From positions 304,759 to 368,758 of the IMG/VR virus record IMGVR_UViG_3300025162_000016: DNA of 64,000 bases. The stretch is one strand, 5' to 3'. Under the pieces are notes generated by a model. The model was not told the DNA's origin. It saw only the letters and a program-made list of their open reading frames with translations, and did not search any database. Positions 29,933-53,300 of the stretch are shown one piece after another. Position numbers and translations under genes: made by a program. Every line of letters begins with the position of its first letter. Positions within the stretch are counted from its first letter, which is position 1.

Positions 29933-30159
29933 CTGTAAAACAATTAATTGAAAAATTAGGTGAGTATGATCCTGAGATGCCGGTTATGAGTAATGGATAT
30001 GAGGGTGGTTTGAATGATATTGATTCATTTGAAAAACGTGATGTGGTGCTTAATTATCACGAAGCATGGTATTATGGTAAACACGAAAGCGTTGATGGGA
30101 TTCATGGGGAAGGTGATGCTTTGAAAAACACTACGGTTAAAGCATTGATCATCGCATAA
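29929..30159 (+). CDS. Hypothetical protein
   Basis: MTVKQLIEKL..YDPEMPV...GYEGG; ATGA overlap. Confidence 0.7.
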   Translation: MTVKQLIEKLGEYDPEMPVMSNGYEGGLNDIDSFEKRDVVLNYHEAWYYGKHESVDGIHGEGDALKNTTVKALIIA

Positions 30160-30162
30160 AAT

Positions 30163-30987
30163 ATGAAATGTACATGGATAGTAGAAAATTTTGTTAAAGA
30201 ACAGTCGTTTAAAGGTCTTATAGAAGCCGTTAAATCGCTTAATTATCCTTTATTGGAGATTAAAGGTGATTACACAAAATCGACATTAGATCAAATAACG
30301 AGTAAGTGTGTTATGTTGAACGGGTCGATTAAAATGGTTAAGCTAGTTAAACAAGACCTTCCATCCGATTGTTATCCTGTAGTTTATTGTAATTTTGAGA
30401 AATACAAATGTTCCTCGTATTATTCTCATTTCGGGTCATATTTGTTTAATGATAAATATTGTATGATGTCATTGAAGGAGTTGGGGAGACAGAAGTTTGA
30501 TGTGTGGGGTCATTATGGGAAGGATGCTTTAATATTTATTCGTCCCGATTCAGGGGAGAAAACTTTTCAAGCGGGATTATTAGATATTATTGATGTGGAT
30601 ACTCTTAATGAATCGAATAAAGAGTATGAACATGAAATGGTATTGGTATCCACTCCCAAAACCATTATATGGGAAGGTCGGTTTGTGGTATCAAGGTTCA
30701 AAGAAATAATTGCATCTTCCACCTACAGATTTCAAGGACAAGTAAGCTTGATTCCGAGCGTACCAACTGAGACAACCAAGTTTTGCAAAGAATTGTTGGA
30801 TAAAACAGATTATAACCCGGACTCGGTTTTTTGTATGGATTTATGTCAGGACAGTGATAAAAACGTGTGGCTTCTTGAGTTAACTAGTTTTTCGAGTGCG
30901 GGTTTGTATGCTACTGACAAGGTTCAGATTGTAAAACGGGTTTCGGAAATTGCTGAGGAAGAGTATAAAAAATATGAAAATTGCTGA
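30163..30987 (+). CDS. ATP-grasp domain protein (DUF4343/R2K-like)
   Basis: FIRP....K.F, E.RFVV, MD....LLEL..FSSAGLY. Confidence 0.75.
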   Translation: MKCTWIVENFVKEQSFKGLIEAVKSLNYPLLEIKGDYTKSTLDQITSKCVMLNGSIKMVKLVKQDLPSDCYPVVYCNFEKYKCSSYYSHFGSYLFNDKYCMMSLKELGRQKFDVWGHYGKDALIFIRPDSGEKTFQAGLLDIIDVDTLNESNKEYEHEMVLVSTPKTIIWEGRFVVSRFKEIIASSTYRFQGQVSLIPSVPTETTKFCKELLDKTDYNPDSVFCMDLCQDSDKNVWLLELTSFSSAGLYATDKVQIVKRVSEIAEEEYKKYENC

Positions 30988-31189
30988 ATTTGTAGAACTA
31001 TGTGTGTGGGATGCTGATCGAGCAGCGAATTTTCCAACGATGATTAATTTAGCAAAGGTTTCTCAAATTGCGTCATGTGGTGAAAGAAAGTTTACCAGAA
31101 TAATTTTTGAGAATCAAACAGAAATCATAATTAATGGAAAATTTGATGCGGTTAAAATGGAGATAAAACATCAATTGGAATCCGAATGA
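30974..31189 (+). CDS. Hypothetical protein
   Basis: Overlapping operon ORF. Confidence 0.55.
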   Translation: MKIAEFVELCVWDADRAANFPTMINLAKVSQIASCGERKFTRIIFENQTEIIINGKFDAVKMEIKHQLESE

Positions 31190-31392
31190 GAATATTAATA
31201 GAATTTGAAGTGACTGGATGTAAGTCGCAGGACGAAGCCAAAGAGAGTGGGAAAGAGTGGGTTAGGAATAATAATATCACAGTCAAATATGGTGAATGTG
31301 AATTAACTCCTACGGGAGATGTTTTTGACTTTCAACCGTTTGGTGATACAATATGGAAAAAATATTATGACGACTACTATAAAGAATATTAA
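31186..31392 (+). CDS. Hypothetical protein
   Basis: ATGA overlap. Confidence 0.55.
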   Translation: MRILIEFEVTGCKSQDEAKESGKEWVRNNNITVKYGECELTPTGDVFDFQPFGDTIWKKYYDDYYKEY

Positions 31393-31849
31393 GATTACTC
31401 AAAGCATTCAGTGGACATGTAGGAGATGGGGTGGTGTATTTTTAGGATTACGGATTAATTTTCCTGTGACCATCACTGATTACGATGGTAAAAATAATAA
31501 TTCCGTATGGCGGCACATTTTCATTGGACTAGGCTTTTTCTTTTTCACATGGAATATTGATATTGATTATAATTTCCGGGATGAGCCGGTGAAATAATAA
31601 CCGTTGACTTTCTATAAACTTCGTGGTAGTATTTGAACATGACCGATCAAGAGATTAATATTACAATTGCGGAATTGATGGGAATTCCAATGGAAGGTTC
31701 GTGGTGTGAACATTGGGGTAAGATAGCTAGTTGCAGTGCAAAACAACAAGCTATCGCTTTTTTAAGAGTTAAGGGAATAAAGATTTGACTTTCTATAAAA
31801 TTCGTGGTAGTATAACAAAAAAGTAAAAATAAAAGTATAACAAAAAAAT

Positions 31850-32161
31850 ATGATTAAAGAACTAACAAAAGAACAGAGTGATAAGTTTGGTGAGTATGTC
31901 AAGGTATGGACCGAGAAGGGGTTGACCACCCAACGGCAAACAGAAAGCGATGCTAAGATTGATTTCTGGAATTTTCAAAAGCACATTCTCAAGAAAGAAA
32001 ATCCGGCACCAGTAATTATTTTAGATTCACCGCTAAAATGTTGGATGGCGGTAGTGATGTCGTCCGCCATGAAGAGTTTGCCGGCAGAAAAAATTCAGAA
32101 AAATGTGATGGATAAGATCACGCCTGTAGTGGGCAAACTCTCTGTAAAACATGAAAACTAA
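31850..32161 (+). CDS. Stand-alone N-terminal module of DUF6745-type proteins
   Basis: MIKELTKEQ...Y...W...GL.T....P.IILDSP; own promoter. Confidence 0.65.
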   Translation: MIKELTKEQSDKFGEYVKVWTEKGLTTQRQTESDAKIDFWNFQKHILKKENPAPVIILDSPLKCWMAVVMSSAMKSLPAEKIQKNVMDKITPVVGKLSVKHEN

Positions 32162-32364
32162 AACAACTAAGGAAATTAAAACTAAACTTCCTAAAACTAA
32201 AGTAGTCAACTATACAGTTGATCCTGAACAGGGGTCTATGTTCTTGGCATACGCTGCCCCAAAAGAATACGCCGTTAAATCCATTGATCGTAAAGGAAAA
32301 AAAGCGACGGTCACATATATTATATAAGCACGTTGAATTCTGAGTTCGTGACCGCTAGAATTAC

Positions 32365-34814
32365 ATGAATAATAAATTAATTAATGATCAAATTTATTTA
32401 CAAGTTGAGGATCAAATTAGATCACAAGTGCTGTCACAAGTTGAGTTACAAGTTTGGTCACAAGTCTATTCACAAGTCTATTCACAAATTCGGTCACAAG
32501 TTAGTTCACAAGTCTGGTCACTAGTTAAGTCACAAGTTGAGTCACCGGTTTGGTCACAAGTTGAGTCACAAGTGCGTCAACACGTTAGAAATGAGCTAAG
32601 ATCAAATGAGCATTAAATTAATTATGGATCAAGTTTGGTCGCAAGTTAGGCATCAAATCGAGTCACAAATTTGGGATCAAGTCTGGTCACAAGTTCAGTT
32701 ACAAGTCTATTCACAAGTCTATTTGCAAGTTGCGTTACAAGTTCTGAATAAAGTTAGGTCACAAGTTGCGGATCAATTGCGGTCACAATTAGAATCAAAT
32801 AAATTATAAAGTAATGCGAGGGACAACATAAAAATGGATTTTCCGGATCAAGTAATATTACAAGAGATGGGTAAAATAATGGGACGAGTTGAGTCACAAA
32901 TTGCGTCACAAGTTAGGTCACAAGTTTCGTCACAAGTTGCGAACCAAATTCAGTCACAGATGATGTCACAAATTCGGAATCAAATAGATAAATAGTGATG
33001 TCTCAATTACAGTTACAAGTTCGGACTCAGGTAAGGCATCAACTTGAAAGGTTTCTAATGTATCCGATGGTGGTACAAACTGGAAGTTTAATATCTCAAG
33101 AAGTCAACAACCAAATAGAATCCCAAGTTGGGCGTAAAATATGGGAAACCGTGGAGTTGAACATAGCATATACAATGGAATTCCAAGTTAAAGAACAACT
33201 AGAATTACATGAATAATACATTAATTAATGATCAAGTCTGGTCACAAGTCTATTCACAAGTTTGGCAACAAGTTCGGAATCAAGTTAGTTCACAAGTCTA
33301 TTCACAAGTTGATTCACAAGTCTGTTCACAAGTTTGGGATCAAGCTGGGTCACAAGTGCGGTCACAAATTTGGGATCAAGTAGGGCAACAAATTAGAAAT
33401 GAGCTAAGATCAAATGAGTATTAAATTAATTAATGATCAAGTCACGTCACAAGTTCAGTCACAAATTTGGGATCGAGTTTGGGATCAAGTGATGTCCCAA
33501 GTTTCGTCACAAGTTAGCTCAGAAGTTTGGAAACAAGTCTGGTCACAAGTTGAGTCAGAAGTGGCAGAACAACTCTGGTCACAAGTCAAGGATCCAGTCT
33601 GGTCACAAGTTCGGTCACAACTAGAATTATATGAATAATAAATTAATTAATGATCAAATTTATTCACAAGTTTCGGTACAAGTTGAGGATCAAGTTTGGG
33701 CACAAGTGCTATCACCAGTTCAGTCACGAGTTTCGTCACAACTGATGTCACAAGTTGAGTCACAAGTTGTGGCACAAGTTTGGTATAAATTAATTAATGA
33801 TCAAATTTATTCACAAATTAGATCACAAGTCTATTCACAAGTTGAGTTACAAGTTGAGTTACAAGTGCGGTCACAAGTCTGGTCACAAGTTGATTCAGAA
33901 GTGCGGTCACAAGTTCGGGATCAAGTTAAGTTACAAGTTGCATCACAAGTTAGGTCACAAGTTGGGGATCAAGTTGGGGATCAAGTTGGGGATCAAGTGA
34001 TGTCCCAAGTTTCGTCACAAGTTAGCTCAGAAGTTTGGAAACAAGTCTGGTCACAAGTTGAGTCACAAGTCTGGTCACAAGTTCAATTAATTAATGATCA
34101 AATTTATTTACAAGTTGAGTCACAAGTCTGGTCACAAGTTAATTCACAAATTCGGTCACAAGTTAGTAATCAAGTTAGGTCACACGTTGCGGATCAATTG
34201 CGGTCACAACTAGAATTACATGAATAATAAATTAATTAATGATCAAATTTATTTACAAGTTGAGGATCAAATTAGATCACAAGTGCTGTCACAAGTTGAG
34301 TCACAAGTCTGGTCACAAGTTCGGCAAGTTGAAGCACAAGTTCGGAAACAAGTTGAGTCACAAGTTTATTCACAAGTCTATTCACAAGTGCTGTCACAAG
34401 TTGAGTCACAAGCCAATTCACAAGTCTGGTCACAAGTTGATTCAGAAGTGCGGGCACAAGTTCGGGATCAAGTTAAGTTACAAGTTGCATCACAAGTTAG
34501 GTCACAAGTTGGGGATCAAGCTGGGGATCAAGTTAGGCAACAAATTATAAATGAACTAAGGTCGCATGAATAATAAATTAATTAATGATCAAATTTATTT
34601 ACAAGTTGAGGATCAAATTAGATCACAAGTGCTGTCACGAGTTGAGAACCAAGTCTGGTCACAAGTTAAGGATCAAGTGGGGCAACAAGTCTGGTCACAA
34701 GTTCGGTTACAAGTTGCGTTACAAGTTAGGGATCAAGTTAGATCACAAGTCTATTCACAAATTCGGTCACAAGTTAGGTTACAAATTTTGTCACAAGTTC
34801 AATCACAATTATAA
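32365..34814 (+). repeat. Block 1 of Gln/Val/Ser-rich (QVxS)n short ORFs (~9 ORFs)
   Basis: 12-bp unit TCACAAGTNNNN; most ORFs start MNNKLINDQ/MSIKLI and end LELHE/LRSNE. Confidence 0.9.
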
Positions 34815-34862
34815 GTGTTGACTTTCTATAAATCCTCTGATAGTATTGGAGGAGTGGAATAA

Positions 34863-35867
34863 ATGAATGTTCAGGATCAAATACATAAAAATGTGTGGTG
34901 TCCGTACGCCGAGGTTTCGGAAAACGTGCCACTTATTATCACATATCATATCGCATTTATATGTGATCAAATAGATAATTCAGTAAGATTTCAAGTAGCT
35001 AACCCACTTGAACTACAAATAAATAATCAAATTAAAAAAGAAACAACAGAAAATATGAATGAAATAGCTAAAGAAATGAATACCGATACGAATGATAAAA
35101 TCCGGGATCAAATTGTAGCCAATATATTGTCTCAACTAAAATCAAAAGTGACGGATGATGAAACCGAAATCGGGAATCAAGTAAAACTCGAAGTGGCAGA
35201 AGAAATCAAATCACATATTATGGCTCAAATGACATCAGAAGACAACAAATTCGTATATCCCTACTTCGATTGCCAGTTCTGGGCATCTTGGTTCAGTTTC
35301 TATGAATTTATGAAGACTGAACTAGGTATTGAATTCCCGAATGAAAAGGAATATAATATCCTCAAAGATTGTCAGAAATATGGCATGGTATTTCCTTTGG
35401 ATGACCTTTGTGTCGTATGTCAGCCGCCGACAATTATTAAAAAGAATAATTCAGGGTTGCACTGTGAGAATGGTCCGGCACTCAGTTATAACGGAGACAA
35501 CGAGATATTTGCATTGAACGGGGTGGTAATGCCTAAAGAATATGTATTAACTCCTGCTAGAGATATTACCGCAGAGACGGTTATGAAGGAGACCAATGTA
35601 GAGATTCGCCGGGAATTACTTAGGAAGGTAGGTATTGAGCGGCTAATGAATGATTTGCCACATAAACTGTTGGAGACCCGTGGTAACTACGAATTGTATA
35701 GTATTGATCTAAGTAATGAAATTAAAGATGCACGTTATCTGAAAATGCAGAACCCATCCATCGGAGTTTTTCATTTGGAGGGACTAGCTCCTGGTATTAA
35801 TACAATTGAGGAAGCTCTTAAATGGAGGAATAATAATTTGTTTGTTGACGCCGAAATTCTAACGTAA
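34863..35867 (+). CDS. DUF6745-type protein
   Basis: W.SFYEF, LHCENGPAL.Y....FALNGV, ETNVEIRRE....GIER, L.M.NPS; own promoter at 34818-34846. Confidence 0.75.
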   Translation: MNVQDQIHKNVWCPYAEVSENVPLIITYHIAFICDQIDNSVRFQVANPLELQINNQIKKETTENMNEIAKEMNTDTNDKIRDQIVANILSQLKSKVTDDETEIGNQVKLEVAEEIKSHIMAQMTSEDNKFVYPYFDCQFWASWFSFYEFMKTELGIEFPNEKEYNILKDCQKYGMVFPLDDLCVVCQPPTIIKKNNSGLHCENGPALSYNGDNEIFALNGVVMPKEYVLTPARDITAETVMKETNVEIRRELLRKVGIERLMNDLPHKLLETRGNYELYSIDLSNEIKDARYLKMQNPSIGVFHLEGLAPGINTIEEALKWRNNNLFVDAEILT

Positions 35868-35885
35868 ACCTAATGTTAAAACCTA

Positions 35886-38800
35886 ATGTTAAAGCTAATG
35901 ACACAAGTTGAGTCACAAGTTAGCTCACAAGTTTGGGATCAAGTTATGGATCAAGTTCGGTCACAAGTCTGGTCACAAGTTGCGTCACAAGTCTATTCAC
36001 AAGTTTGGAAGCAAGTTATGGATCAAGTTCGGTCACAAGTTGAGATTCAAGTGGGGCAACACGTTATAAATGAACTGGGGTCGAATGTATAATAAATTAA
36101 TTGATGATCAAGTTCGGTCACAAGTTAGGGATCGAGTTTGGAAACAAGTTGAGTTACAAGTTTCAACTCAAGTGTCGTCACAAGTTAGTTCAGAAGTGAG
36201 GTCGCAAATTTGGGATCAAGTTTGGAAACAAGTCTATTCACAAGTTCAGTCACACGTCTGGGATCAAGTCGAAGCACAAGTTCGGAATCAACTTCGGTTA
36301 CAACTAGAATTACATGAATGATATAATTAGATATCAAATTAGGGATCGAGTTAGGTCACAAGTTGTGGATCAAGTCTGGTCACAAGTTTCGGCACAAGTT
36401 GATTCAGAAGTGAGGTCGCAAGTTTGGGATCAAGTGATGTTACAAGTTCAGTCACAAGTTGCGAACCAAATTCGGTCACAACTAGAATCACATGAACATT
36501 AATAAATTAATTAATGATCAAGTCTGTTTACAAGTTTGGGATCGAGTTAGGTCGCAAGTTTCGTCACAAGTTACGTTACAAGTCACGTCACAAGTTGAGG
36601 ATCAAGTGATGTCCCAAGTTCAGTCACAAGTTCAGTCACAAGTCTATTCACAAGTCACGTCACAAGTTCAGTCACAAGTTTGGGATCGAATTAGGTCACA
36701 AGTTCAGTCACGAGTTGCGTCACAAGTCTGGTCACAAGTTGAGTTACAAGTCACGTCACAAGTTGTGTTACAAGTTCGGAATCAAGTTAAATCACAAGTG
36801 CGGTCACAACTAGAATTACATGAATGATATAATTAAATATCAAATTAGGGATCGAGTTAGGTCACAAGTTGCGGATCAAGTTCGTTCACAAGTCTGGTCA
36901 CAAGTTAGGTCACAAGTTCTGAATAAAGTTAGGTCACACGTTGCGGCACAAGTTGGGGTAAAAGTTGGGGTGAAAGTTGAGTCACAAATTAGGGATCAAG
37001 TTATGAATCAAGTTAGGTCACAAGTTAGTGATCAAGTTGCGACACAAGTGCGGACACAAGTGCAGAATCAAGTGCGGTCACAACTAGAATTACATGAATG
37101 ATATAATTAAAAACCAAATTCTTGATCAAGTTAGGTCACAAGTTGAGAACAAAGTCTGGTCACAAGTTAGGGATCAAGCTTGGGCACAAGTCACGTCACA
37201 AGTTAGGGATCAAGTCTGGTCACAAGTTGGGTCACAAGTTGGGGCACAAGTTCGGTCACAAGTTCGGGTACAAGTAGCTGAACAAGTTGGGTCACAAGTT
37301 GGGTCACAAGTTGGGGCACAAGTTCGGTCACAAGTTCGGGTACAAGTAGCTGAACAAGTTGGGTCACAACTAGAATTACATGAATGATATAATTAAATAT
37401 CAAATTTTTGATCGAGTTAGGTTACAAGTGCAGGATCAAGTTTGGTCACAAGTTGACGTTCAAATTTGGGATCAAATCTGGTTACAGGTAATGTCACAAG
37501 TGTTGTTACAAGTTGAGTTACAAGTTCGGAATCAAGTAATTAATCAAGTTCAGTTACAAGTGATGACTCCATTGATAAAACGAATGGATGAACATGTGGA
37601 TGATCAAGTTTGGACCCACGTTTGGAATCAAATTGGGTTACAAGTGGCACAGCAAATTCAATCCCAAGTCAGAAATCAAGTTAGGTCACAACTCGAATCA
37701 CATGAATAATCTAATTAGATACCAAATTAGATCACAAGTTGATTCACAAGTGCGGTCACAAGTTATAACACTCTGGTCCCAAGTTACGTCACAAGTGCGG
37801 CCACAAGTCTGTTCACAAGTTTTGGATCAAGTTGCGTCACAAGTTCGGTCACAAGTGTGGTCACAAGTTAGTGATCAAGTTGCGACACAAGTTGGGGCAC
37901 AAGTTCGGAATCAAGTAATGTTACAACTCGAATCACATGAATAATCTACTTAAAAACCAAATTTGGGATCAAGTTGAGGCACAAGTTGAGTTGCAAGTGG
38001 GATATCAAATTTGGGATCAAGTTAGGTCACGAGTTGAGTCACTAATGATGTTACAAGTTCGGAAACAAGTTGAGTCACAAGTTTATTCACAAATTCGGTC
38101 ACAAGTTAGGGATCAAGTGGGGCAACAAGTTCAGTCACAAGTCTGGTCACAAGTTATGTCACAACTAGAATCACATGAATGATATAATAAGGAATAAAAT
38201 TGGGAAACAAGTTCTGGTACAAGTGATGTCCCAAGTTGATGAACAAGTTAGTTCACAAGTTAGGGATCAAGTCTGGTCACAAGTTAAGTCACAAGTCTAT
38301 TCACAAGTCTATTCACAAGTTGAGGATCAAGTTAGTTCACAAGTCTATTTGCAAGTTGAGTTACAAGTCTATTCACAAGTCACGTCACAAGTTAGGTCAC
38401 AAGTTATGTCACAAGTCTGTTCACAAGTTAGGGATAAAGTAATGTTACAACTCGAATCACATGAATAATCTACTTAAAAACCAAATTTGGGATCAAGTTG
38501 AGGCACAAGTTTGGAATCGAGTTAGGTCACAAGTTCGGAATAAAGTTAAGTTACAAGTTGCATCACAAGTCTGGTCACAAGTTCGGAATCAAGTAATGTT
38601 ACAAGTCTGGGATCAAGTGCGGTCACACGTTTCGTCACAACTCGAATCACATGAATAATCTACTTAAAAACCAAATTTGGGATCAAGTATGGTCGCAAGT
38701 CACGTCACAAGTTCTGTTACCTGTGATGTCCCAAGTTGATGAACAGGTTGGGGTTCAAATCTGGTCACAAGCTAAGTCACAAGTTGAGTCGGAAGTGGCA

Positions 38801-41800
38801 GAACAAGTCTGGTCACAAGTTCGGAATCAAGTAATGTTACAACTCGAATCACATGAATAATCTACTTAAAAACCAAATTTGGGATCAAGTTGAGGCACAA
38901 GTTGAGTTGCAAGTGGGGGATCAAATTTGGGATCGAGTTAGGTCACGAGTTGAGTCACTAATGATGTTACAAATTTGGGATCGAGTTAGGTCACGAGTTG
39001 AGAACCAAGTCTGGTCGCAAGTTAAGGATCAAGTGGGGCAACAAGTTATAAATGAACTAAGGTCGCATGAATAATAAATTAATTAATGATCAAGTTTGGA
39101 ATCAAGTTAGGCAACAAGTCTATTCACAAGTTGAGTTACAAGTTGAGTTACAAGTGCGGTCACAAGTTGGGCAACAAGTTAGGGATCAAGTCTTGATACA
39201 AATCCGGTTACAAATTTGGTCACAGATTCAGTTACAAGTTCGGTCACAAGTCGAGTCAGAAGTAGCAAAACAAGTGTGGTCACAAATTAGAAATCACGTT
39301 ATGTCACAATTAGAATCACATGAATGATATAATAACGAATAAAATCGGGAAACAAGTTCAGTCACAAGTTTGGCAACAAGTTGAGTACCCAATGTTGAAA
39401 CACCTCGTATCACAAGTTACGTCAAGAGGTCGGGATAAAGTTAGGCAACAAGTTAGTAATCAAGTCTGGTCACAAATTAAGTCACAGGTCAATTCACAAG
39501 TTCAGTCACGAGTTGCGTCACAAGTCTGGTCACAAGTCCGGTTACAAGTTTCGTCACAAGTCTGGTTACAAATTTGGCAACAAGTTATAAATGAACTAAT
39601 ATCGCATGAATAATATAATAACGAATAAAATCGGGAAACAAGTTCAGTCACAAGTTAGTTCACAAGTCTGGTCACAACTAGAATTACATGAATAATCAAA
39701 TTAAAGATCAAATTTGGGGTCGAGTTTTGTCACAAGTTTCAGCACAACTTCACCTAATTGATGCTCAAGTCTGGTCACAAGTTAGGTCACAAGTTGAGAA
39801 CCAAGTCTGGTCACAAGTTTCGTCACAAGTTATGTTAAAAGTTGAGTCACAAGTTGAGTCACAAGTTATAAATGAACTGGGGTCGCATGAATAATAAATT
39901 AATTAATGATCAAGTCTGGTCACAAGACTATTCACACATCTATTCACAAGTTCCGTTACGAGTTTGGGTTCAAGTCTGGTCACAAGTCCGGGATCAAGTT
40001 CGGAAACAAGTCTGGCAAGTTGAGGATCAAGTTACGTCACAAGTTTCGTCACAAGTTTGGGATCGAGTCTGGTCACAAGTTCAGTCACAAGCCAATTCAC
40101 AAGTTGAGGCTCAAGTTCGTTCACAAGTCTGGTCACAAGTTATGTCACAAGTTACGTCACAAGTTGATGAACAAGTCTGGTCACAAGTTCGGGATCAAGT
40201 GATGTTACAAGTTCAGTCACGAGTTGCGTCACAAATCTGGTCACAAGTCTGGTCACCAGTCGGGGCACAAGTTTCGTCACAAGTTAGCTCACAAGTTAGC
40301 TCACAAGTTTGGCAACAAGTTGAACAAGTTAGCTCACAAGTTCCGTCACAAATTAGGTCGCACGTTGAGTTACAAGTTAGGAACCGAGTTATAAATGAAC
40401 TAAGATCGCATGAATAATAAATTAATTAATGAACAAGTCTGGTCACAAACTTGGGATCAAGTTGCGGCACAAGTTGTGGATCAAGTTAACTCACAAGTTA
40501 TGTTAAAAGTTGAGTCGGAAGTGGCAGAACAAGTCTGGTCACAAGTTCGGAATCAAATTATGTCACAAGTCTATTCACAAGTTGCGTTACAAGTGCAGGA
40601 TCAAGTTAGTTCACAAGTTAGGAATCAAGTTTGGGATCGAGTAATGTTACAAGTTCGGAATAAAGTTAAGTCACAAGTTCAGTCGCAAGTTTGGGATCGA
40701 GTAATGTTACAAGTTGCGTCACAAGTTATAAATGAACTGGGATCGAATGTATAATAAATTAATTAATGATCAAGTCTGGTTACAAGTTTGGGATCGAGTT
40801 AGGTCGCAAGTTAGTTCACAAATTTGGGATCGAGTCTGGTCACAAGTTAAGTCACAAGTTGCGGCACAAGTTGATTCACAAGTGCGGTCACAAGTAAATA
40901 GTCAAGTTATAGCACAAATTAGAAATAAGCTAAGATCAAATGAGTATTAAATTAATTGATGATCAAGTCTGGTCACAAGTTCAACCAGAAATTTGGGATC
41001 GAGTTAAATCGCCAATGGTGAAACATCTAGTATCACAAGTCACATTACAAGTCACGTTACAAGTTGAGTCACAAGTTATGTCACAAGTTTGGCAACAAAT
41101 TTGGCAACAAGTTTCGTCACAAGTTCGGTCACAACTAGAATCACATGAATAATACATTAATTAATGATCAAGTTTGGCAACAAGTTAGCTCACAAGTTTG
41201 GCAACAAGTTGAACAAGTTAGCTCACAAGTTGCGTCACAGGTTTCGTCACAAGTCAAGGATCCAGTCTGGTCACAAGTTCGGTCACAACTAGAATTATAT
41301 GAATAATAAATTAATTAATGATCACTTTTGGGATCAAGTCTGGTCACAGGTGATATCACAAGCTTCGTTACAAATTGAGTTACAAGTTAGCTCACAAGTT
41401 ATATCACAAGTCGGGTCACAAGTTCGGTCACAAGTTTGGAAGCAAGTTCAGTCACAAGTTAGTAATCAAGTTAGGCAACAAATTATAAATGAACTGGGGT
41501 CGAATGTATAATAAATTAATTAATGATCAAGTTTGGAATCAAGTTAGGCAACAAGTCTATTCACAAGTTGATTCACAAGTTGCGGCACAAATAAATAATC
41601 AGATTAAGTCACAAGTTCAGAATCAAGTTGCGTCACAAGTTTGGAAGCAAGTTCAGTCACAAGTTAGTAATCAAGTTATAGCACAAATTAGAAATGAACT
41701 GGGGTCGAATGTATAATAAATTAATTAATGATCAAGTCTATTCACAAGTGCTGTCACAAGTTTGGGAGCAAGTTGCGTCACAAATAAATAATCAGATTAA

Positions 41801-44800
41801 GTCACAAGTTCAGAATCAAGTGATAGCACAAGTCACGTCACAAGTTTGGGATCAAGTTTCAAATCAAGTTTTGGAACGAATTATATCTCAAGTTTCGGAA
41901 CAAGTTTCGGAACAAGTTGAGTTATACGTTTTGGATCAAGTTAGAGCACATGTAGTGAGTAAACTTTGGGTAAGTAAATAATCAAATATATAATAACTTG
42001 TTACGAATTATGAAGGAGAAAATGATATATCAAGTGTCGAGGGACGTGCAGAATCAAGTGCGGGATAAGGTTTGGAATCAAGTTGAGTTACACGTTTTGG
42101 ATCAAATTTCGTCACAAGTCAATTCACAAGTCAATTCACAAGTCTGGTCACAAGTCTGGTCACAAGTCTGGTCACAAGTGGGGGATCAAGTTCGGTCACA
42201 ATTAGAATCACATGAATAATAAATTAGTTAATGATAAAATCTGGTCACAAATTTGGGATCGAATTAGGTCACAAGTTCAGTCACGAGTTAGCTCACAAGT
42301 TAGCTCACAAGTTTGGCAACAAGTTATGAATCGAGTTACGTCACAAGTTAATGATCAAGTCTATTCACAAGTTATGTCACAAATTTGGGATCGAGTCACG
42401 TCACAAGTTGAGGATCAAGTTGCGGCACAAGTTCGGTCACAACTAGAATTACATGAATAATAATAAATTAGTTAATGATCAAGTCTATTCACAAGTTATG
42501 TCACAAGTTGAGTCACAAGTTTCAACTCAAGTGTCGTCACAAGTTGAGTTGGAAGTTGTGTTACAAGTTGCGGTACGAGTTAGTTCACAAGTTAGGAATC
42601 AAGTTTGGGATCGAGTTAGTTCACAAGTTAGGAATCAAGTTTTGGATCGAGTTAGGTCACAAGTTGATTACCCAATGATGAAACACCTCCTATCACAAGT
42701 TACGTCACAAGTTAGGTCACAAGTTAGGTCACAAGTCTATTCACAAGTCCGGTCACAAGTTAGCTCGGAAGTTTGGAAACAAGTTTCGTCACAAATAGCA
42801 GAACAAGTGCGGTCACAATTAGAATTACATGAATGATATAACTAACTATCAAATTTGGGTTCAAGTTAAGTCACAAGTCTGGTCACAAGTTAAGTCACAA
42901 GTTGAGGATCAAGCTTGGGCACAAGTCACGTCACAAGTAGCAGAACAAGTTTGGGATCAAGTCTGGTCACAAGTTCGGAATCAAATCACGTTACAAGTCA
43001 ATTCACAAGTAGCAGAACAAGTAGCAGAACAAGTGCGGTCACAAATATCTTCCAATGGACAATTTATATAATCAAGTTCAGTCACAAGTTGCATCCCACG
43101 TTGATTCCCAAGTCTGGTCACAAGTTTCAACTCAAGTCTCGTCACAAGTTGAATTAGAAGTGAGGTCGCAAGTCTATTCACAAATTGAGGATCAAGTTCG
43201 TTCACAAGTCAATTCACAAGTTGCGTCACAAGTAGCAGAACAAGTGCGGTCACAAATATCTTCCAATGGACAATTTATATAATCAAATTATTGATCAAGT
43301 TGAGTTACACGTTTTGGATCAAGTTTCGTCACAAGTCTGGTCACAAGTCTGGTCACAAGTCTGGTCACAAGTTGATTCAGAAGTGCGGTCACAAGTTCTG
43401 AATAAAGTTAGGTCACAAGTTTCGTCACAAGTTTGGGATCAAGTTTGGTCACAAGTTAGGGATCAAGTGATGTTACAAGTTTCGTCACAAGTTTGGGATC
43501 AAGTGATGTTACAAGTTGCGTTACAAGTTCTGAATAAAGTTAGGTCACAAGTTGCGGATCAATTGCGGCACAATTAGAATCAAATAAATTATAAAGTAAT
43601 GCGAGGGACAACATAAAAATGGATTTTCCGGATCAAGTAATATTACAAGAGATGGGTAAAATAATGGGACGAGTTAGGTCACAAGTTGCGGATCAAGTTC
43701 GGTCACAAGTGAGGACACAAGTTTGGGATCAAGTTTGGAATCGACTTATTAAAGCTGGTGGATCACAAGTTAAATCAGAAATTGAGTCACAAATATCTTC
43801 CAATGAACAATTTATATAAACAAGTTCAGTCACAAGTAGCAGAACAAGTGCGGTCACAAGTTGATTCACAAGTTGCGACACAAGTTCGAATTCAAATCAA
43901 TTCACAAGTTACGTCACAAGTCTATTCACAAGTTGCGGATCAAGTTTCGGAACAAGTCTGGTCACAAGTCTGGTCACAAGTTTCGCCACAAGTCCATTCA
44001 CAAGTATGGTCACAAGTTCGGTTACAAGTTGCGTTACAAGTTTGGGATCAAGTTAGATCACACGTTGCGGCACAAGTCTATTCACAAGTGCTGTCACAAA
44101 TTAGAGATCAAGTTATAAATAAGCTAAGATCACATGAATAATACATTAATTAATTATCAAACCTATTCACAAGTTTGGGATCGAGTGAGGGGACACGTTG
44201 CGGATCAAATAATGTTACAAGTGATGACTCCATTGATAAAACGAATGGATGAACAAGTTGCGTCACAAGTTTCGTCACAAATTTCGTCACAAGTCACGTC
44301 ACAAAATGAATTTGGGTCGCATGAATAATAGATTAATTAAAGACCAAATCGAGTCACAAATCTATTCACAAGTCACGTCACAAGTTAGGGATCAAGTCTG
44401 GTCACAAGTCACGTCACAAGTAGCAGAACAAGTGAGGTCACAAGTCTGTTCACAAGTTCGAATTCAAGTTAGGTCACAAGTTGCGTTACAAGTTGAGTTA
44501 CAAGTTCGGTTACAAGTAAATGAGCAGATTCGGAATCAAGTTGCGGCACAAGTTATAAATGAACTGGGGTCGAATGTATAATAAATTAATTAAAGACCAA
44601 ATCGAGTCACAAGTTTGGCGACAAGTTGAAGCACAAATCGAGTCACAGGTGGTATACCCAATGTTCGGACACCTCGTATCACAAATTGCGTCACAAGTTT
44701 CATCTCAAGTTATGTCACGAGTTGAGCCACAAGTTAGGACACAAGTGAATGAGCATGTTGCGGATCAATTGCGGTCACAATTAGAATTACATGAATAATA

Positions 44801-45196
44801 AATTAGTTAATGATCAAGTCTATTCACAAGTTTCGACTCAAGTTTCGGAACAAGTCTGGTCACACGTTGTGTCACAAGTTTCGTCACAAGTTGATGATCA
44901 AGTTTGGGATCAAGTTAGATCACACGTTGCGGCACAAGTTAGTTCACAAGTTCGGTCACAACTAGAATTACATGAATAATAATCGAATTATTGATCAAGT
45001 TTCGACTCAAGTTTGGTCACAAGTTTGGGATCAAGTTGAGTCACAAGTTAGCTCACAAGTCTGGTCACAAGTTCGGTTACAAGTTGCGTTACAAGTTAGG
45101 AATCAAGTTTGGTCACAAGTTGCGGCACAAGTTAAGGAAAATGTTGAATCACAAATTAGAAGCCACCTCGCCCGCTCTATTTTGTTTGTTGACTAG
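35886..45196 (+). repeat. Block 2 of (QVxS)n short ORFs (~38 ORFs, ~30-180 aa, mostly overlapping)
   Basis: Successive ORFs mostly joined by 8- or 11-nt start/stop overlaps (ATGAATAA, ATGAATGA, ATGTATAA, ATGAGTATTAA). Confidence 0.9.
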
Positions 45197-45248
45197 TTAT
45201 GGGTTTTGTGGTTGACAAATTGAGGTAGTTGGTGTAGACTATTAAAGC

Positions 45249-45449
45249 ATGAGAACTGCTGAAGAAATAATTAAAGAAAATGGATGGGATGAATATAAGA
45301 CAGTGGCGGAAATTAAAGCCATTCAAGCCGATGCGTGGCAAGACGCCATTAAACACGCAATTTCCATAGCTAAAAGATATAGTAAAGATGATTCATGGGG
45401 TCAGGAAAAAATCATAGTGAAAGAACTCGGTAATCTTCTTGAAAAATAA
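45249..45449 (+). CDS. Hypothetical protein
   Basis: ATG just after TTGACA/TAGACT promoter. Confidence 0.6.
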   Translation: MRTAEEIIKENGWDEYKTVAEIKAIQADAWQDAIKHAISIAKRYSKDDSWGQEKIIVKELGNLLEK

Positions 45450-45654
45450 TATGAATACTGATTATGAACAAGGATGGGATGCTTATATGTCCGGCCTATA
45501 TAAAGAGGATTGCCCACACACAAACAACCTCTCACAAGGTGGAGATTGGTTAGATGGTTGGTGGGCGGCACAAATACAATTGAGAGATTCCAATGTAGTA
45601 GCAGAAAAACCAACACTAAAACCAATACCATGTAAGTGCGGTAAAGAATATTAA
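45439..45654 (+). CDS. Hypothetical protein, possibly truncated by the scaffold insertion
   Basis: YEQGWDAY..G....CP...W..GW motif; stop lies inside the scaffold copy. Confidence 0.55.
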   Translation: MKNNMNTDYEQGWDAYMSGLYKEDCPHTNNLSQGGDWLDGWWAAQIQLRDSNVVAEKPTLKPIPCKCGKEY

Positions 45655-45817
45655 TAAACATAGGTTAATTGACTAACAAAAAGATGAGAATAGAAATATT
45701 CCAGCACGGAGCTTATAGTCCCGAGTGTTTTAAAAACCTAAATTTAGTAAGAATAAATTTCAATAGAACAGGTAACTATATGGTGAAGTGCTGGAACAGA
45801 CCAGTTACTATATCACC
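45640..45817 (+). ncRNA. Putative scaffold RNA copy B (5'-truncated) fused to one CRISPR repeat (45782-45817)
   Basis: Near-identical to 63859-64000, followed by an exact 36-bp repeat. Confidence 0.6.
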
Positions 45818-46117
45818 CAAATGAGTTATATAAACACGAAACGGATGAAGAACGAATTATTCGTATGATAAAAGCTAGATCGGCAGAAGATACATATGCT
45901 TATTGTATCATGAGACTTCAAAATTTAGGACGAATTTGAAAATTTAAAAATATGAGACTTAAACGAAATAACGTGCTTTTGACTAGTATTAGTTTCATTT
46001 TGGCGAGTGTGGTATTGTGGATATCGCCGTCCACAAGTTTCAATGTTGAATTTGCGATTTTTGATTTGAAATTAGCATCGATATTGTTTGCGGCATATCT
46101 GTGCATGGATAAAAAAT

Positions 46118-46612
46118 ATGAAACTAAATAAAATGTATCTAGTATTGGGCGATTCATCCGACGATGGACACGGTAAGTATGAGAAAGTTTTACTTAATAG
46201 TAACGTTAAAGTAGACTCAATTCGGTACGCCTACAAGGCATCATGTAAGCTTACAGGGGTGAGTTTTAATCATAGCACAGACTATACAGAGGTTGGTAAT
46301 AAGAATCAAATTGCGACTAAATATGAGGATGGCGTGCTTCATAAAAAAGTTTTTGATATTCTTGCTAAACATGGGCTTACTAAGGACATGTTGAGAGAAT
46401 GGGACGTGTGCGATTATTTCGAGGAAGGAGATTTTGAAGATGGTCAATTTGGGTTGTATGCAGAAATTTTCGTTAGTCTTTGGATTTGGTTTGTTAAACT
46501 GAGCTTACCTGAGGTAGTAATATTAGAACGTGACATTCCTAAAGAGGTGATTCCGAATATTAATGGCTGTAAAAATCTATCTAGTCAATTTGGTTACGGA
46601 TTATATATTTAA
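46118..46612 (+). CDS. Conserved phage hypothetical protein
   Basis: LGD.S.DGHG...AYKASC..TG; FGYGLY C-terminus. Confidence 0.7.
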   Translation: MKLNKMYLVLGDSSDDGHGKYEKVLLNSNVKVDSIRYAYKASCKLTGVSFNHSTDYTEVGNKNQIATKYEDGVLHKKVFDILAKHGLTKDMLREWDVCDYFEEGDFEDGQFGLYAEIFVSLWIWFVKLSLPEVVILERDIPKEVIPNINGCKNLSSQFGYGLYI

Positions 46613-46624
46613 AATGATTAATAT

Positions 46625-46954
46625 ATGGGAACTAATTTAGACATTAACGAAATTTATAAAATTTTAAGTGAACATAAGTTGTTTGTGGGAAGAATGATTT
46701 CTTCTTATAAAAAATCTCCAAAGGGATGTACATGCGTTTGGAATGGAAACATTGTAACTCGCACATATGGAAAGATTTGGTATGGTGATTTGAATCTAAC
46801 CAAAGAAGGTGATATTTTGAAGGAAATTGCTAATTGTATTGGAGAACCTCTTTATATTCTACGGGAAAGTGATTGTCGTTTTGGATCGGAGAATGATCCA
46901 ATTGATACGATTATTGGTAGAAGTATTTGGAACACAACTCAGAACCTTGTTTAA
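46625..46954 (+). CDS. Conserved phage hypothetical protein
   Basis: GRMIS..K, KIWYGDL.LT, LYILRE.D.RF. Confidence 0.7.
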   Translation: MGTNLDINEIYKILSEHKLFVGRMISSYKKSPKGCTCVWNGNIVTRTYGKIWYGDLNLTKEGDILKEIANCIGEPLYILRESDCRFGSENDPIDTIIGRSIWNTTQNLV

Positions 46955-47023
46955 AAAAGAGCACACATTTTGTTGAAAATCTCGAACTGTTAGAAGAATT
47001 CTCAGAGTCATTATTGAAATAAT

Positions 47024-48096: not shown

Positions 48097-48246
48097 ATGA
48101 AAACACCTATATATACAAAAATTGCACAGCGAAACTGGATGGAAAAGCGAAAGAAAGCGGGATATTGCTGGGCTACTTTCTTTACCACCAAGGAGAACGT
48201 AGCTAAATTAAAGGAGTTCTACGCTGAACTCAAAAAGTCCAAATGA
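48097..48246 (+). CDS. Small basic TnpB-associated protein (49 aa, not in track)
   Basis: MKTPIYTKIAQRNWMEKRKKAG...KLKEFYAEL; ATGA overlap with 48243. Confidence 0.65.
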   Translation: MKTPIYTKIAQRNWMEKRKKAGYCWATFFTTKENVAKLKEFYAELKKSK

Positions 48247-52418: not shown

Positions 52419-52640
52419 ATGCTTAAAAAAGTTATATATCGAATTTCAGAACGAGTTATAGATCAAGTCTATTTACGAGTTGGGGCACAAGTTCAGAATC
52501 AAGTTGAGTCACAAGTCTGGTCACAAGTTGAGTCACAAGTTCAGTCACAAGTTAAAGAGCAAGTTATGTCACAAGTTGAGGGTCAAGTTTGGGTACAAGT
52601 CAGGGATAAAATTATGGCTCAGATTCATAGTCAGATTTAG
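52419..52640 (+). CDS. Isolated (QVxS)n short ORF
   Basis: Same tetrapeptide repeat as at 32-45 kb. Confidence 0.75.
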   Translation: MLKKVIYRISERVIDQVYLRVGAQVQNQVESQVWSQVESQVQSQVKEQVMSQVEGQVWVQVRDKIMAQIHSQI

Positions 52641-52964: not shown

Positions 52965-53300
52965 ATGAATAAAAACAGAAATACAGCAAAAATTAATGCA
53001 CAGCAGGGTGATGTAATTCTAAAACGTCTCACGGCTCTCCCATCCGGCGAAGCAAAGCTAATTTCTAAAGGCAAATTGGTCCTTGCGGATGGGGAAAGTA
53101 CCGGGCATTATCACGGATTATTTGAAGAAAACAGTGAATTGCGTCAGTACGGCAACACAATGGTCCTCGATCTAAAAGAGGAAGCGACATTGACTCATCA
53201 AGAGCATGGACCGATTACCTTGGAGCCGGGGTTGTGGGAAGTTGGCAAGGTTCAGGAGTATGATTATTTTGCTCAAATGAAGCGTCCGGTGATGGATTAA
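52965..53300 (+). CDS. QGDV/TGH.H beta-rich protein, usual partner of DUF6745 genes
   Basis: QQGDVIL..LVLADGESTGHYH..LTHQEHGPITL.PG.W.V...QEYD. Confidence 0.75.
   Translation: MNKNRNTAKINAQQGDVILKRLTALPSGEAKLISKGKLVLADGESTGHYHGLFEENSELRQYGNTMVLDLKEEATLTHQEHGPITLEPGLWEVGKVQEYDYFAQMKRPVMD

Follow-up and report, generated by a model that had tools for sequence, protein, structure and literature searches.

The question raised by this locus was whether a dense array of very short open reading frames (ORFs), all built from one tetrapeptide repeat, in a 369-kb freshwater phage represents genuine coding sequence and, if so, from which protein the repeat derives. The analysed window comprised 64,000 nucleotides (positions 304,759 to 368,758 of IMG/VR record IMGVR_UViG_3300025162_000016). 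Between positions 32365 and 45196 of this window, 47 ATG-to-stop ORFs of 29–198 codons (median 78 aa, about 3,890 codons in all) were identified on the + strand. Each consisted of a start cap, a run of Q-V/I-x-S/D/N/L units and an end cap. An earlier note, based on the sequence alone, had described this array, and its observation was confirmed, with two corrections. Firstly, the downstream ORF was located in the +1 frame of the upstream one (42 of 46 junctions) rather than in the −1 frame. Secondly, the array was found to be interrupted at 34815–35885 by a 334-aa gene, while a further isolated member was located outside it. The following features were distinguished, with coordinates referring to the window:

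31604–31632 (+): promoter-like motif, copy 1 (TTGACTTTCTATAAA, then 5–6 nt, then TGnTAGTAT), upstream of a 51-aa ORF (31633–31788); an exact 15-mer and one of 3 exact copies in the 369-kb genome, all at this locus.
31785–31813 (+): promoter-like motif, copy 2, upstream of the N-half ORF.
31850–32161 (+): N-half of the DUF6745-family protein (103 aa) as a separate ORF, the only copy in the genome.
32151–32327 (+): 58-aa ORF of unknown function that overlaps the N-half stop by 11 nt and is absent in a related contig (L226).
32365–34814 (+): upstream sub-array of 9 micro-ORFs (32365–32616, 32606–32809, 32834–32995, 32998–33216, 33209–33424, 33414–33638, 33631–34227, 34220–34573, 34566–34814), each checked to be open from ATG to stop.
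34818–34846 (+): promoter-like motif, copy 3, followed by GGAGG and the ATG of the C-half gene, and located between two in-frame stops that separate the last upstream micro-ORF from the C-half.
34863–35867 (+): C-half gene (334 aa), with about 130 aa of decayed arm repeats followed by the DUF6745 domain, the only copy in the genome.
35886–45196 (+): downstream sub-array of 38 micro-ORFs with starts at 35886, 36085, 36314, 36492, 36820, 37094, 37380, 37702, 37937, 38175, 38461, 38651, 38853, 39067, 39320, 39606, 39688, 39887, 40410, 40747, 40940, 41145, 41299, 41504, 41709, 42010, 42212, 42453, 42829, 43055, 43266, 43619, 43803, 44134, 44321, 44574, 44791 and 44972; eight of them also have a further upstream in-frame ATG (36070, 37588, 39872, 40732, 41489, 41694, 44249, 44559).
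52419–52640 (+): isolated 73-aa member of the same repeat family, outside the array, recognized by a DNA match to the array and by its translation.
52965–53300 (+): 111-aa protein (phrog_27831, unknown function), homologues of which lie directly downstream of canonical DUF6745 genes in related phages.

The 12-nt unit underlying the repeat was strongly strand-specific. The pentamer CAAGT occurred 585 times in the array on the + strand and 4 times on the − strand, and 51 times in the other 51 kb of the window; about 14 are expected from base composition. Of the spacings, 410 were exactly 12 nt. Heads (MNNKLINDQ, MNDII, MSIKLI, MDNLY) and tails (LELHE, LESHE, ELRSHE, ELGSNV) were as described in the note. 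ORFs overlapped at 41 junctions, by 8 nt (34 junctions), 11 nt (4) or 17 nt (3), while four junctions showed short gaps. Overlaps of 23 nt in a raw ORF list shrank to 8 nt when the inner ATG of MNWGRM-YNKLI was used. Q and V/I were fixed, whereas the third residue of the unit (x) was highly variable (R 130, W 126, S 69, E 63, A 49, Y 37 and others).

To investigate whether the array is maintained as coding sequence, its codons and reading frames were examined. No stop occurred at 685 variable codons, whereas 58 (TAG alone 41) were expected from position-wise base frequencies, and TAT (Tyr) was used where TAG would arise. Pro (2 against 20 expected) and Gly (24 against 73 expected) were depleted, while W, R and Y were enriched at x. 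The pattern was far beyond chance: of 674 anchor spacings, 626 were multiples of 3, every exception was located at an ORF junction or a spurious anchor, and no frame-breaking indel was found inside any ORF. Although paralogues were at most 78–87% identical, all 47 ORFs were intact; in simulations, 5% random substitution left 17 of 47 and 10% left 7 of 47 intact. Three independent related contigs (L011, L225 and L226) carried 17 further complete micro-ORFs, intact and with the same caps and overlaps, but with different unit numbers and order. These results indicated that the micro-ORFs are discrete genes under selection for translation, as the note had proposed, rather than one long gene or neutral satellite DNA.

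A role primarily at the level of DNA or RNA, such as a phased protein-binding array or a structured long RNA, would be consistent with the extreme strand asymmetry, the invariant CAAGT core and the third base of the x codon. This base was G in 74% of cases, against 15% G at third positions genome-wide, and was conserved in every lineage examined. Q was encoded by CAA in 98% of cases. This unusual uniformity of synonymous-type positions counts against the preferred, peptide-level reading and points either to recent homogenization or to a constraint at the nucleic-acid level that a protein-only model does not explain. However, stop avoidance, frame conservation and amino-acid biases were specific to one reading frame, the other frames were repeatedly broken, no Rfam match was found, and the same repeat is unquestionably coding inside canonical DUF6745 genes. 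A primary nucleic-acid function was considered improbable.

Inflation or mis-ordering of the array by short-read assembly was also considered. In four public runs, from 2 studies, the region broke into unitigs of 175–376 nt with many alternative joints, and the related contigs were short (1.1–3.9 kb). Nevertheless, all unitigs placed on the region matched with 0 differences in the 4 runs, at about the same depth as the single-copy C-half gene, and one piece (34748–36092) spanned the C-half into both sub-arrays. Only one stretch of 100 nt or more within the array exceeded 88% identity to another (101 nt, 96%), so that most ORFs carried unique sequence, and three independent contigs showed the same architecture. 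An artefact is thus very unlikely, although order and total length of the array rest on one metagenome assembly and the unitigs confirm the local sequence only.

The origin of the repeat, which the note had not recognized, was found in proteins of the DUF6745 family (Pfam PF20530). In canonical phage and bacterial homologues, such as P0002–P0004 and gp38 of the Mycobacterium prophage prophiGD102-1, an N-terminal domain of about 75 aa, 0 to about 80 tetrapeptide units (Q-V/L-x-S/D/G/N, with W/R/G/E at x) and a C-terminal DUF6745 domain of about 200 aa are encoded by one ORF. In close relatives, the codons were also the same (TCACAAGT). In the window, this gene is split. The ORF at 31850–32161 was 60% identical to residues 1–70 of P0002 and was detected by hmmsearch with the N-domain profile (E 7e-36). 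The gene at 34863–35867 matched PF20530 (E 2e-13), gave a single genomic hit, had 153 homologues and was 99.0% identical in nucleotide sequence to that of L011, with 9 of 10 changes at third codon positions. The arm is present as free, amplified genes on both sides of the C-half, rather than as one in-frame insertion inside a single gene. The 111-aa protein at 52965–53300, which the note had proposed for co-folding with the peptides, is not part of the repeat family. The DUF6745 family has no known function, and no paper on it was found in the library searched.

AlphaFold2 predicted the one micro-ORF modelled (36820–37101) as a single uninterrupted helix (residues 2–92, mean pLDDT 87). The in-gene arm of P0003 was predicted as a helical hairpin at pLDDT 50–60, and its only structural matches were generic helical hairpins. 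No solved relative of the DUF6745 fold was found. Other short-period repeats with fixed and variable positions, such as pentapeptide-repeat proteins and the NANP repeats of the Plasmodium circumsporozoite protein, are beta-helical or disordered and sit inside single long proteins, whereas the present repeat is predicted to be alpha-helical and is distributed over many small genes.

The architecture was not unique to this phage. Smaller arrays of 2–12 capped, repeat-only, same-strand ORFs of 50–120 aa flanked arm-less DUF6745 genes in other uncultivated phages (loci L025, L070, L101, L127, L150 and L162). Arrays in L025, L070 and L101, and smaller sets in L136, L146, L150, L162 and L164, were located beside DUF6745 genes. 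Many of the smaller arrays showed stop/start overlaps of 8, 11, 14 or 17 nt, while some had spacers of about 200 nt; their cap sequences differed from those in the window and their DUF6745 genes were whole rather than split. Among 69 non-redundant loci, free micro-ORFs occurred beside 0 of 34 genes with the arm and 7 of 35 without it (Fisher p = 0.011), although some of these loci were fetched through the repeat itself, so that ascertainment was not clean. No published description of such arrays was found in the literature that could be searched.

This distribution bears on the possibility that the array is a selfish or near-neutral coding satellite, in which the 12-nt repeat expands by slippage, stop/start junctions merely cap peptide length so that products are harmless, and selection acts only against nonsense codons, through polarity on downstream cistrons or mRNA decay. 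Consistent with such a satellite, synonymous positions were homogeneous within a locus but differed between loci (the third base of Val is T, C or G in different phages), the CAAGT core was nearly invariant (Q third-base difference rate of 0.008), array order was mosaic between close relatives whose C-half is 99% identical, and the array was 4–20 times larger than any other found. However, Pro and Gly were depleted and W, R and Y enriched at x, free-standing homologues with their own spacers of about 200 nt exist in distant phages, and the strict either/or distribution with the in-gene arm is not expected for junk. In addition, caps differed least between paralogues (0.01–0.03 per site, against 0.15–0.23 at synonymous-type sites), although those local alignments were anchored on the junctions. 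This explanation was considered unlikely, but remains the strongest alternative. Tandem gene amplification in large DNA viruses (poxvirus 'genomic accordions', multigene families) similarly involves local expansion of same-strand paralogues, with rapid changes in copy number and order between close strains. In those viruses the copies are whole conventional genes, whereas here the amplified unit is a domain fragment, made of an internal 12-nt repeat, with overlapping stop/start junctions.

The micro-ORFs might alternatively be silent donor cassettes for recombination into an expressed arm, to vary length and sequence of the DUF6745 arm, as in pilin (pilE/pilS) or VlsE antigenic variation, where partial, homologous, same-strand segments lie next to a related expressed gene and strains are mosaic. 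The micro-ORFs are homologous to the arm and on the same strand, and close strains were mosaic in a way that looks like gene conversion. However, every cassette keeps an ATG, a conserved cap and a stop, which silent donors do not need. The only possible recipient, the arm of the C-half gene, is decayed and poorly matches the units, and no invertible or recombinase signal was seen. Absence of nearby cassettes from genes that carry an arm is the opposite of what a donor system predicts. This reading was regarded as improbable.

Variation was concentrated at x, and its confinement to codon positions 1 and 2, with a fixed third base, resembles the logic of AAY codons in diversity-generating retroelements (DGRs). 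The genome encodes a bona fide DGR elsewhere, with a reverse transcriptase, an accessory gene, a template repeat and two variable repeats. However, the template repeat (genome 116922–117026) matched only its two neighbouring targets, with 14/15 and 10/12 mismatches at template adenines, and nothing in the array. All four bases occurred at both variable positions, the variation is not adenine-specific, no invariant template copy with AAG exists, and the variation covers hundreds of sites over 13 kb rather than one variable region of about 100 nt. Differences between close strains were block exchanges rather than point changes at x. The same pattern occurred in loci from unrelated phages, a comparison that left their reverse transcriptase content aside. 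Targeted hypermutation is thus largely refuted for the resident DGR and, overall, was the least likely alternative.

No promoter-like or terminator-like signal beyond chance was found inside the array, which fits long polycistronic messages. Since a promoter-like motif precedes the gene at 34863, there appear to be two transcription units rather than the one polycistron inferred in the note. Shine-Dalgarno motifs are rare genome-wide, which renders their absence here uninformative. The uniform +1 step at 42 of 46 junctions, and the shared frame of the last upstream micro-ORF and the C-half, separated by two stops, could in principle reflect one or a few giant proteins made by repeated programmed +1 frameshifting or hopping, which could rejoin N-half, arm and C-half. 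However, each junction has a conserved in-frame ATG, and in the commonest junction type the old frame carries several stops (TAA TAA .. TAA TGA). A promoter-like motif and a GGAGG sit between the last micro-ORF and the C-half, homologous arrays elsewhere use 4-, 14- or 17-nt overlaps or spacers of about 200 nt, and dozens of serial shifts would leave a negligible yield. Such giant proteins were considered very improbable.

Taken together, the interpretation in the earlier note was partly supported. Its inference of selected, discrete ORFs, its suggestion of helices (for the one peptide modelled, as a prediction) and its statement that it knew of no described system of this form were supported by the analysis, while its suggested roles as decoys, interchangeable subunits or recombination donors remain hypotheses, of which the donor role fits poorly with conserved start codons and caps. 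The analysis itself establishes that the region is a battery of 47 real small genes, each encoding a short conserved N-cap, 3 to about 40 four-residue units and a short conserved C-cap. It further establishes that these genes are free-standing paralogues of the variable-length, predicted helical arm that, in most phage DUF6745-family proteins, is inserted between the N- and C-terminal domains, and that, in this phage lineage, the gene is split and the arm has been released and amplified. Growth, transcription, translation and function of the array are inferred from sequence alone; there is no expression evidence, and no RNA run was listed. In this view, the array grew by unequal recombination or slippage between 12-nt units and between whole cap-repeat-cap modules; copying of the stop/start junction with each module would explain the regular +1 frame step. 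Two long messages would be transcribed from the sigma-70-like promoter motifs in front of the N-half and the C-half. Ribosomes that terminate at the TAA embedded in codons 2–6 of the next gene would restart at the ATG 5–14 nt upstream, and neighbours would then be made in roughly equal amounts.

The overall reading was assigned a probability of about 0.55, and its functional part is held with low confidence, in the absence of experimental or structural evidence for any interaction between the peptides and DUF6745 proteins. As a best guess, the peptides are co-translated, detachable arms that work with the DUF6745 halves and may pair helix-to-helix with the residual arm of the C-half, with the C-terminal tail of the N-half, or with each other. 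The variable residue would set the binding surface. In this way, the peptides would supply in trans, and in many sequence variants, what the fused arm supplies in cis in other phages.

The virus record of 368,758 bp, of which the window is the last 64 kb (304759-368758), has direct terminal repeats and was judged complete, and the public sequencing runs that hold it are lake and freshwater metagenomes, with no RNA run listed. Relatives of its genes were found on T4-like phage contigs carrying rIIB, DNA ligase, and NAPRTase. Shine-Dalgarno motifs were rare throughout the genome, with 213 of 235 long ORFs having none.

Analysis of the repeat region confirmed the observation in the earlier note of an array of about 47 mostly overlapping micro-ORFs. 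Between 32365 and 45196, 47 ORFs of 29-198 codons were present on the + strand, each of which was verified to run from ATG to stop without an internal stop codon. The motif CAAGT occurred 585 times on the + strand of the array and 4 times on the - strand, against about 14 expected, and 410 of the spacings were exactly 12 nt. Overlaps were found at 41 of 46 junctions (34 of 8 nt, 4 of 11 nt, and 3 of 17 nt), and no terminator-like site was detected inside the array, as expected from the layout of a translationally coupled polycistron. At 42 of 46 junctions the next ORF was in the +1 frame, whereas the earlier note had described a shift of -1. The junction DNA fell into a few conserved types, such as ..CTAGAATTAC-ATG-AATAATAAATTAATTAATGATCAA, in which the upstream TAA lies inside codons 2-3 of the next gene. 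With respect to programmed frameshifting into one or a few long products, the sequence showed a regular +1 step, an ATG at each junction, and, in the commonest junction type, several stops in the old frame. Two micro-ORFs (32834-32995 and 43619-43819) shared an atypical head (MDFPDQVILQEMGKIMGRV) and a non-overlapping start preceded by GAGGGA. These ORFs are located in the best multi-ORF duplicated block of the array (32630-32938 versus 43416-43723, 87% identity) and may mark internal restart points.

The array was shown to be coding sequence under selection rather than non-coding satellite DNA. At the 685 variable codons (position x of the tetrapeptide unit) no stop was found, against 58 expected from the position-wise base frequencies; TAG alone would account for 41, and TAT (Tyr, 37 cases) appears in its place. 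Pro and Gly were depleted, while Trp, Tyr, Glu, Met, and Ala were enriched. Of 674 anchor spacings, 626 were multiples of three, and every exception was located at an ORF junction or a spurious anchor, so that no frame-breaking indel lies inside any ORF. The paralogues are old: only one stretch of 100 nt or more exceeded 88% identity, and the best longer matches were 78-87% identical. All 47 ORFs were nevertheless intact, whereas in simulations 5% random substitution left 17 of 47 intact and 10% left 7. The other two + frames and the - strand were open only in short, irregular pieces. No Rfam family was found in 30000-47000. The interpretation in the earlier note, of a selected, diversifying peptide library made from one polycistron, was partly supported by these and the following results.

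The features of the locus that link the array to a protein family, together with those noted in its surroundings, were as follows.

30163-30987: R2K-clade ATP-grasp domain protein (PF18299, E 1e-7), just upstream of the locus
31604, 31785, and 34818: promoter-like motif (TTGACTTTCTATAAA, 5-6 nt, TGnTAGTAT); near matches at genome 279517 (+) and 312134 (-)
31850-32161: 103-aa ORF, N-half of the DUF6745-family protein
32365-45196 (+): array of 47 micro-ORFs
34863-35867: 334-aa ORF that interrupts the array, C-half of the DUF6745-family protein
52419-52640: isolated 73-aa repeat-only ORF, 7 kb beyond the array
52965-53300: 111-aa protein (phrog_27831), about 300 nt downstream of the isolated repeat-only ORF
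18519-19664, 24108-25283, and 48243-49493: three TnpB / IS605 OrfB-like (Cas12f-like TNB domain) genes within 31 kb of the phage genome end; the related phage contig L012 also carries two
57639-59357: 572-aa ORF combining an intein splicing domain, an HNH endonuclease motif, and a papain-family cysteine protease domain, which looks like an intein-interrupted protease

The C-half scored 50.5 bits against the Pfam family DUF6745 (PF20530), for which the gathering score is 27, and had 153 homologues at E <= 0.001, all of which carried PF20530. These homologues typically consist of a conserved N-terminal domain of about 75 aa (..W..GL..APV..LDSP..CW..), 0 to about 80 units of the same tetrapeptide (the arm), and the DUF6745 domain, as exemplified by the proteins P0002, P0003, P0004, P0090, and P0094 and the phage loci L016 and L021. 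The N-half matched residues 1-70 of P0002 at 60% identity (E 8e-22) and was also found with the N-domain profile (E 7e-36). The genome contained exactly one N-half and one C-half. Instead of a single polypeptide with N-domain, arm, and C-domain, the gene of this lineage is therefore split into two ORFs that lie 2.7 kb apart. Nine micro-ORFs and one unrelated 58-aa ORF lie between the halves, and 38 micro-ORFs follow the C-half. Homologues of the 111-aa phrog_27831 protein sit immediately after canonical DUF6745 genes in the related phage loci L012, L013, L016, and L021, and the ancestral gene pair seems to have been pulled apart in this phage.

The last upstream micro-ORF and the C-half are in the same frame but are separated by two stops, between which a copy of the promoter-like motif followed by GGAGG was found. 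The same motif precedes the N-half and a 51-aa ORF, and these three are the only exact copies in the genome. Insertion of a copy inside the former DUF6745 gene may be what split it. From these motifs, and from the absence of terminator-like sites inside the array, two long transcription units are inferred.

Structure prediction with AlphaFold2 of the DUF6745 protein P0003, using 52 homologues, gave confident N- and C-domains (pLDDT about 90), while the repeat was predicted as a helical hairpin (helices 79-125 and 131-173) at low confidence (pLDDT 50-60). A single micro-ORF (36820-37101), modelled with 11 paralogues, was predicted as one continuous helix over residues 2-92 (mean pLDDT 87). Fold searches with the DUF6745 model gave no PDB match at E <= 0.001 (best Foldseek E-value 0.69), and a wider search matched only generic helical hairpins to the arm, so that no function could be inferred from the fold. 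Among AlphaFold DB clusters, other DUF6745 or unnamed proteins were retrieved, some of the DUF6745 proteins being fused to leucine-rich repeats in cyanobacteria. No convincing periodicity in the chemical class of the variable residue was found along the helix. The net charge of the peptides was near zero, and they therefore do not look like cationic membrane-active peptides.

To investigate whether this architecture occurs elsewhere, IMG/VR was scanned for six phased Gln-Val codon pairs, which returned more than 119 loci. Many of these held repeat-only ORFs of 45-120 aa with their own conserved caps, and several held arrays with stop/start overlaps of 8-17 nt, namely L025 (4 ORFs), L070 (11), L101 (12), and L127 (7). 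The arrays flanked a DUF6745 gene in L025, L070, and L101, while no DUF6745 gene was found within L127. Exact junction motifs of the present array were absent from other IMG/VR contigs, indicating that the junction sequence, but not the architecture, is lineage-specific. A scan of cellular genomes showed mostly single small QV-repeat ORFs and no large arrays. When 80 loci were instead retrieved through the C-domain, most had one gene with an in-gene arm and no micro-ORFs, whereas a few (L146, L150, L162, and L164) had an arm-less gene plus 2-5 separate repeat-only genes, some with spacers of about 200 nt. Over 69 non-redundant loci, free micro-ORFs were found with 0 of 34 arm-bearing genes, against 7 of 35 arm-less genes (Fisher p = 0.011), although part of this set was ascertained through the repeat itself. 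This either/or pattern is a fusion/fission signal and is the main reason for thinking that the peptides work with the DUF6745 protein. It also argues against a silent-cassette variation system, in which the micro-ORFs would be donors for an expressed recipient gene: arm-bearing genes in this set had no cassettes nearby, the arm of the C-half is decayed, and all cassettes retain an ATG, caps, and a stop.

The repeat is old. The only cultured-phage relatives of the DUF6745 gene, both annotated as hypothetical, were gp38 of the Mycobacterium abscessus prophage prophiGD102-1 (locus L223, 1985-3430) and gp174 of Microcystis phage Ma-LMM01 (locus L222, 3491-4627). In gp38, about 50 units of Q-L-x-D/G, with W, R, or G at x, lie between the same two domains, whereas gp174 has no repeat. 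The gp38 gene lies beside a RepA-like replication initiator, and the Ma-LMM01 gene lies among DNA polymerase, uracil-DNA glycosylase, and clamp-loader genes, which hints at an early or replication-associated role.

Three independent metagenome contigs from relatives of this phage, L011 (ENA, 3.9 kb), L225, and L226 (both JGI), carried the same caps and overlaps as the array. The C-half gene of L011 was 99.0% identical in DNA, with 9 of 10 changes at third codon positions, and one orthologous micro-ORF was 98.8% identical. The order and length of the neighbouring micro-ORFs were nevertheless mosaic. The DUF6745 gene was also split in L011 and L226, and in L226 the separate N-half was followed directly by micro-ORFs. 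The array therefore turns over by block exchange and unit gain or loss, while every ORF stays open.

An assembly artefact was considered by comparison with Logan unitigs. Unitigs from four runs in two studies covered 32.2-37.7 kb with no differences and at depths close to that of the single-copy C-half, and one piece of 1,345 nt spanned 34748-36092. The array itself was broken into pieces of 175-376 nt with many alternative joints, so that these data solidly support the local sequence but not the total length and order of the array. Unitig depth was zero in all four runs over 31800-32193, at the N-half ORF, while neighbouring bins were covered; since filtering leaves some records out, this was treated as a hole in the data and not as a finding.

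Within the units of the array, Gln was encoded by CAA in 98% of cases and the third base of Val was T in 66%. The third base of the x codon was G in 74%, although only 15% of third positions genome-wide are G, and the first two bases of x were almost random. In other lineages (L025, L070, L101, L127, L141, L145, L148, L150, L160, and L188, all repeat-bearing loci), the same layout of 10 near-fixed and 2 free bases was found. The third bases of the Gln, Val, and Ser codons were nearly fixed within a locus but differed between loci (for Val, T, C, or G), and G was kept at the third base of x in 61-100% of units in all but L141 (G in 41%, T in 43%). Among the closest paralogue pairs, difference rates per site were 0.41 at x1, 0.37 at x2, 0.15 at x3, 0.23 at V3, 0.15 at S3, 0.008 at Q3, and 0.01-0.03 in the caps. 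These rates, which are not independent of the overall logo because periodic units can be aligned out of register, fit homogenisation by recombination plus diversifying selection, or at least freedom, at x.

A resident diversity-generating retroelement (DGR) could have explained this pattern, but does not. Outside the window, at genome 113638-118215, a classical DGR was identified with the following parts.

113638-115035 and 115120-116499: two paralogous target genes
116552-116902: Avd-like 116-aa ORF
116922-117026: template repeat
117217-118215: 332-aa reverse transcriptase
116375-116479 and 114928-115015: variable repeats, differing from the template at 14/15 and 10/12 adenines

The template repeat matched only these two variable repeats and nothing in the array, and the x codons use all four bases at positions 1 and 2.

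Scans of the micro-ORFs themselves against Pfam, PHROGs, NCBIfam, and PADLOC gave only sub-threshold low-complexity hits (YpjP, GvpQ, MSCRAMM, and REase_II). A HMMER-based search with a single micro-ORF against 5.8 billion proteins gave no hit at E <= 0.001, probably as a result of composition-bias correction, and no column block of the micro-ORF alignment was conserved enough for a search for related loci. A profile of the micro-ORFs hit 2,531 cluster representatives in 1.84 billion proteins, although at least some top hits are eukaryotic low-complexity proteins. The very long hits that were scanned (P0193, P0214, P0218, P0248, and P0267) either matched eukaryotic-type domains (ZP, cornifin, chitin-binding) or matched nothing, and were taken as low-complexity matches rather than relatives. 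A feature search in the ESM Atlas returned 100 clusters of small viral hypothetical proteins with no common Pfam family, of which the best three scored 0.90. Literature searches for DUF6745, for literal repeat strings, and for descriptive phrases found nothing relevant.

Taken together, the analysis demonstrated that the genes are real, that they are homologous to the DUF6745 arm, and that they alternate with it across phages; one of them is predicted to be helical. Growth of the array by unequal recombination of cap-repeat-cap modules, its transcription from two early-type promoters, and its translation by termination-reinitiation at the overlapping junctions, with dependence of each cistron on termination upstream, are inferred. 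More speculative, at a probability of about 0.2-0.3, is the proposal that the peptides are detachable arms that pair with the residual arm of the C-half, with the tail of the N-half, or with each other, and that the variable residue forms the functional surface. None of the alternatives, which are a tolerated selfish coding satellite, donor cassettes, serial frameshifting, a role at the nucleic-acid level, and an assembly artefact, explains the caps, the stop avoidance, and the either/or distribution together.

In a further-reaching version of this proposal, which is not excluded but remains unlikely on present evidence, the array would be a phage-encoded combinatorial set of such arms. Each peptide would dock onto the split DUF6745 halves, or onto another arm, through the invariant Gln/Val stripe and present its own pattern of variable residues (W/R/E/Y...). 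One enzyme or sensor core would then be re-targeted by 47 alternative arms made in fixed proportions from two messages, with the variable residue under diversifying selection in an arms race with the host. This would be a modular specificity system of a kind not described in viruses.

The evolutionary processes involved, domain fission and tandem amplification, are ordinary, whereas the resulting system and its 47-gene extreme in this phage were not found described in any source searched. Small phage proteins are the least understood part of viral gene content, and repeat-only ORFs are routinely dismissed as low-complexity noise. The present results show that such ORFs can be under clear selection and that they belong to a widespread family. 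The layout of 10 near-fixed and 2 free bases per 12-nt unit, conserved across lineages, is an unexplained mutational or selective signature. The fusion/fission pattern with DUF6745, which sits among replication and early genes in Microcystis and Mycobacterium phages, provides a concrete and testable partner for a dark protein family, and the array is also a natural experiment in how a domain fragment becomes a gene family.
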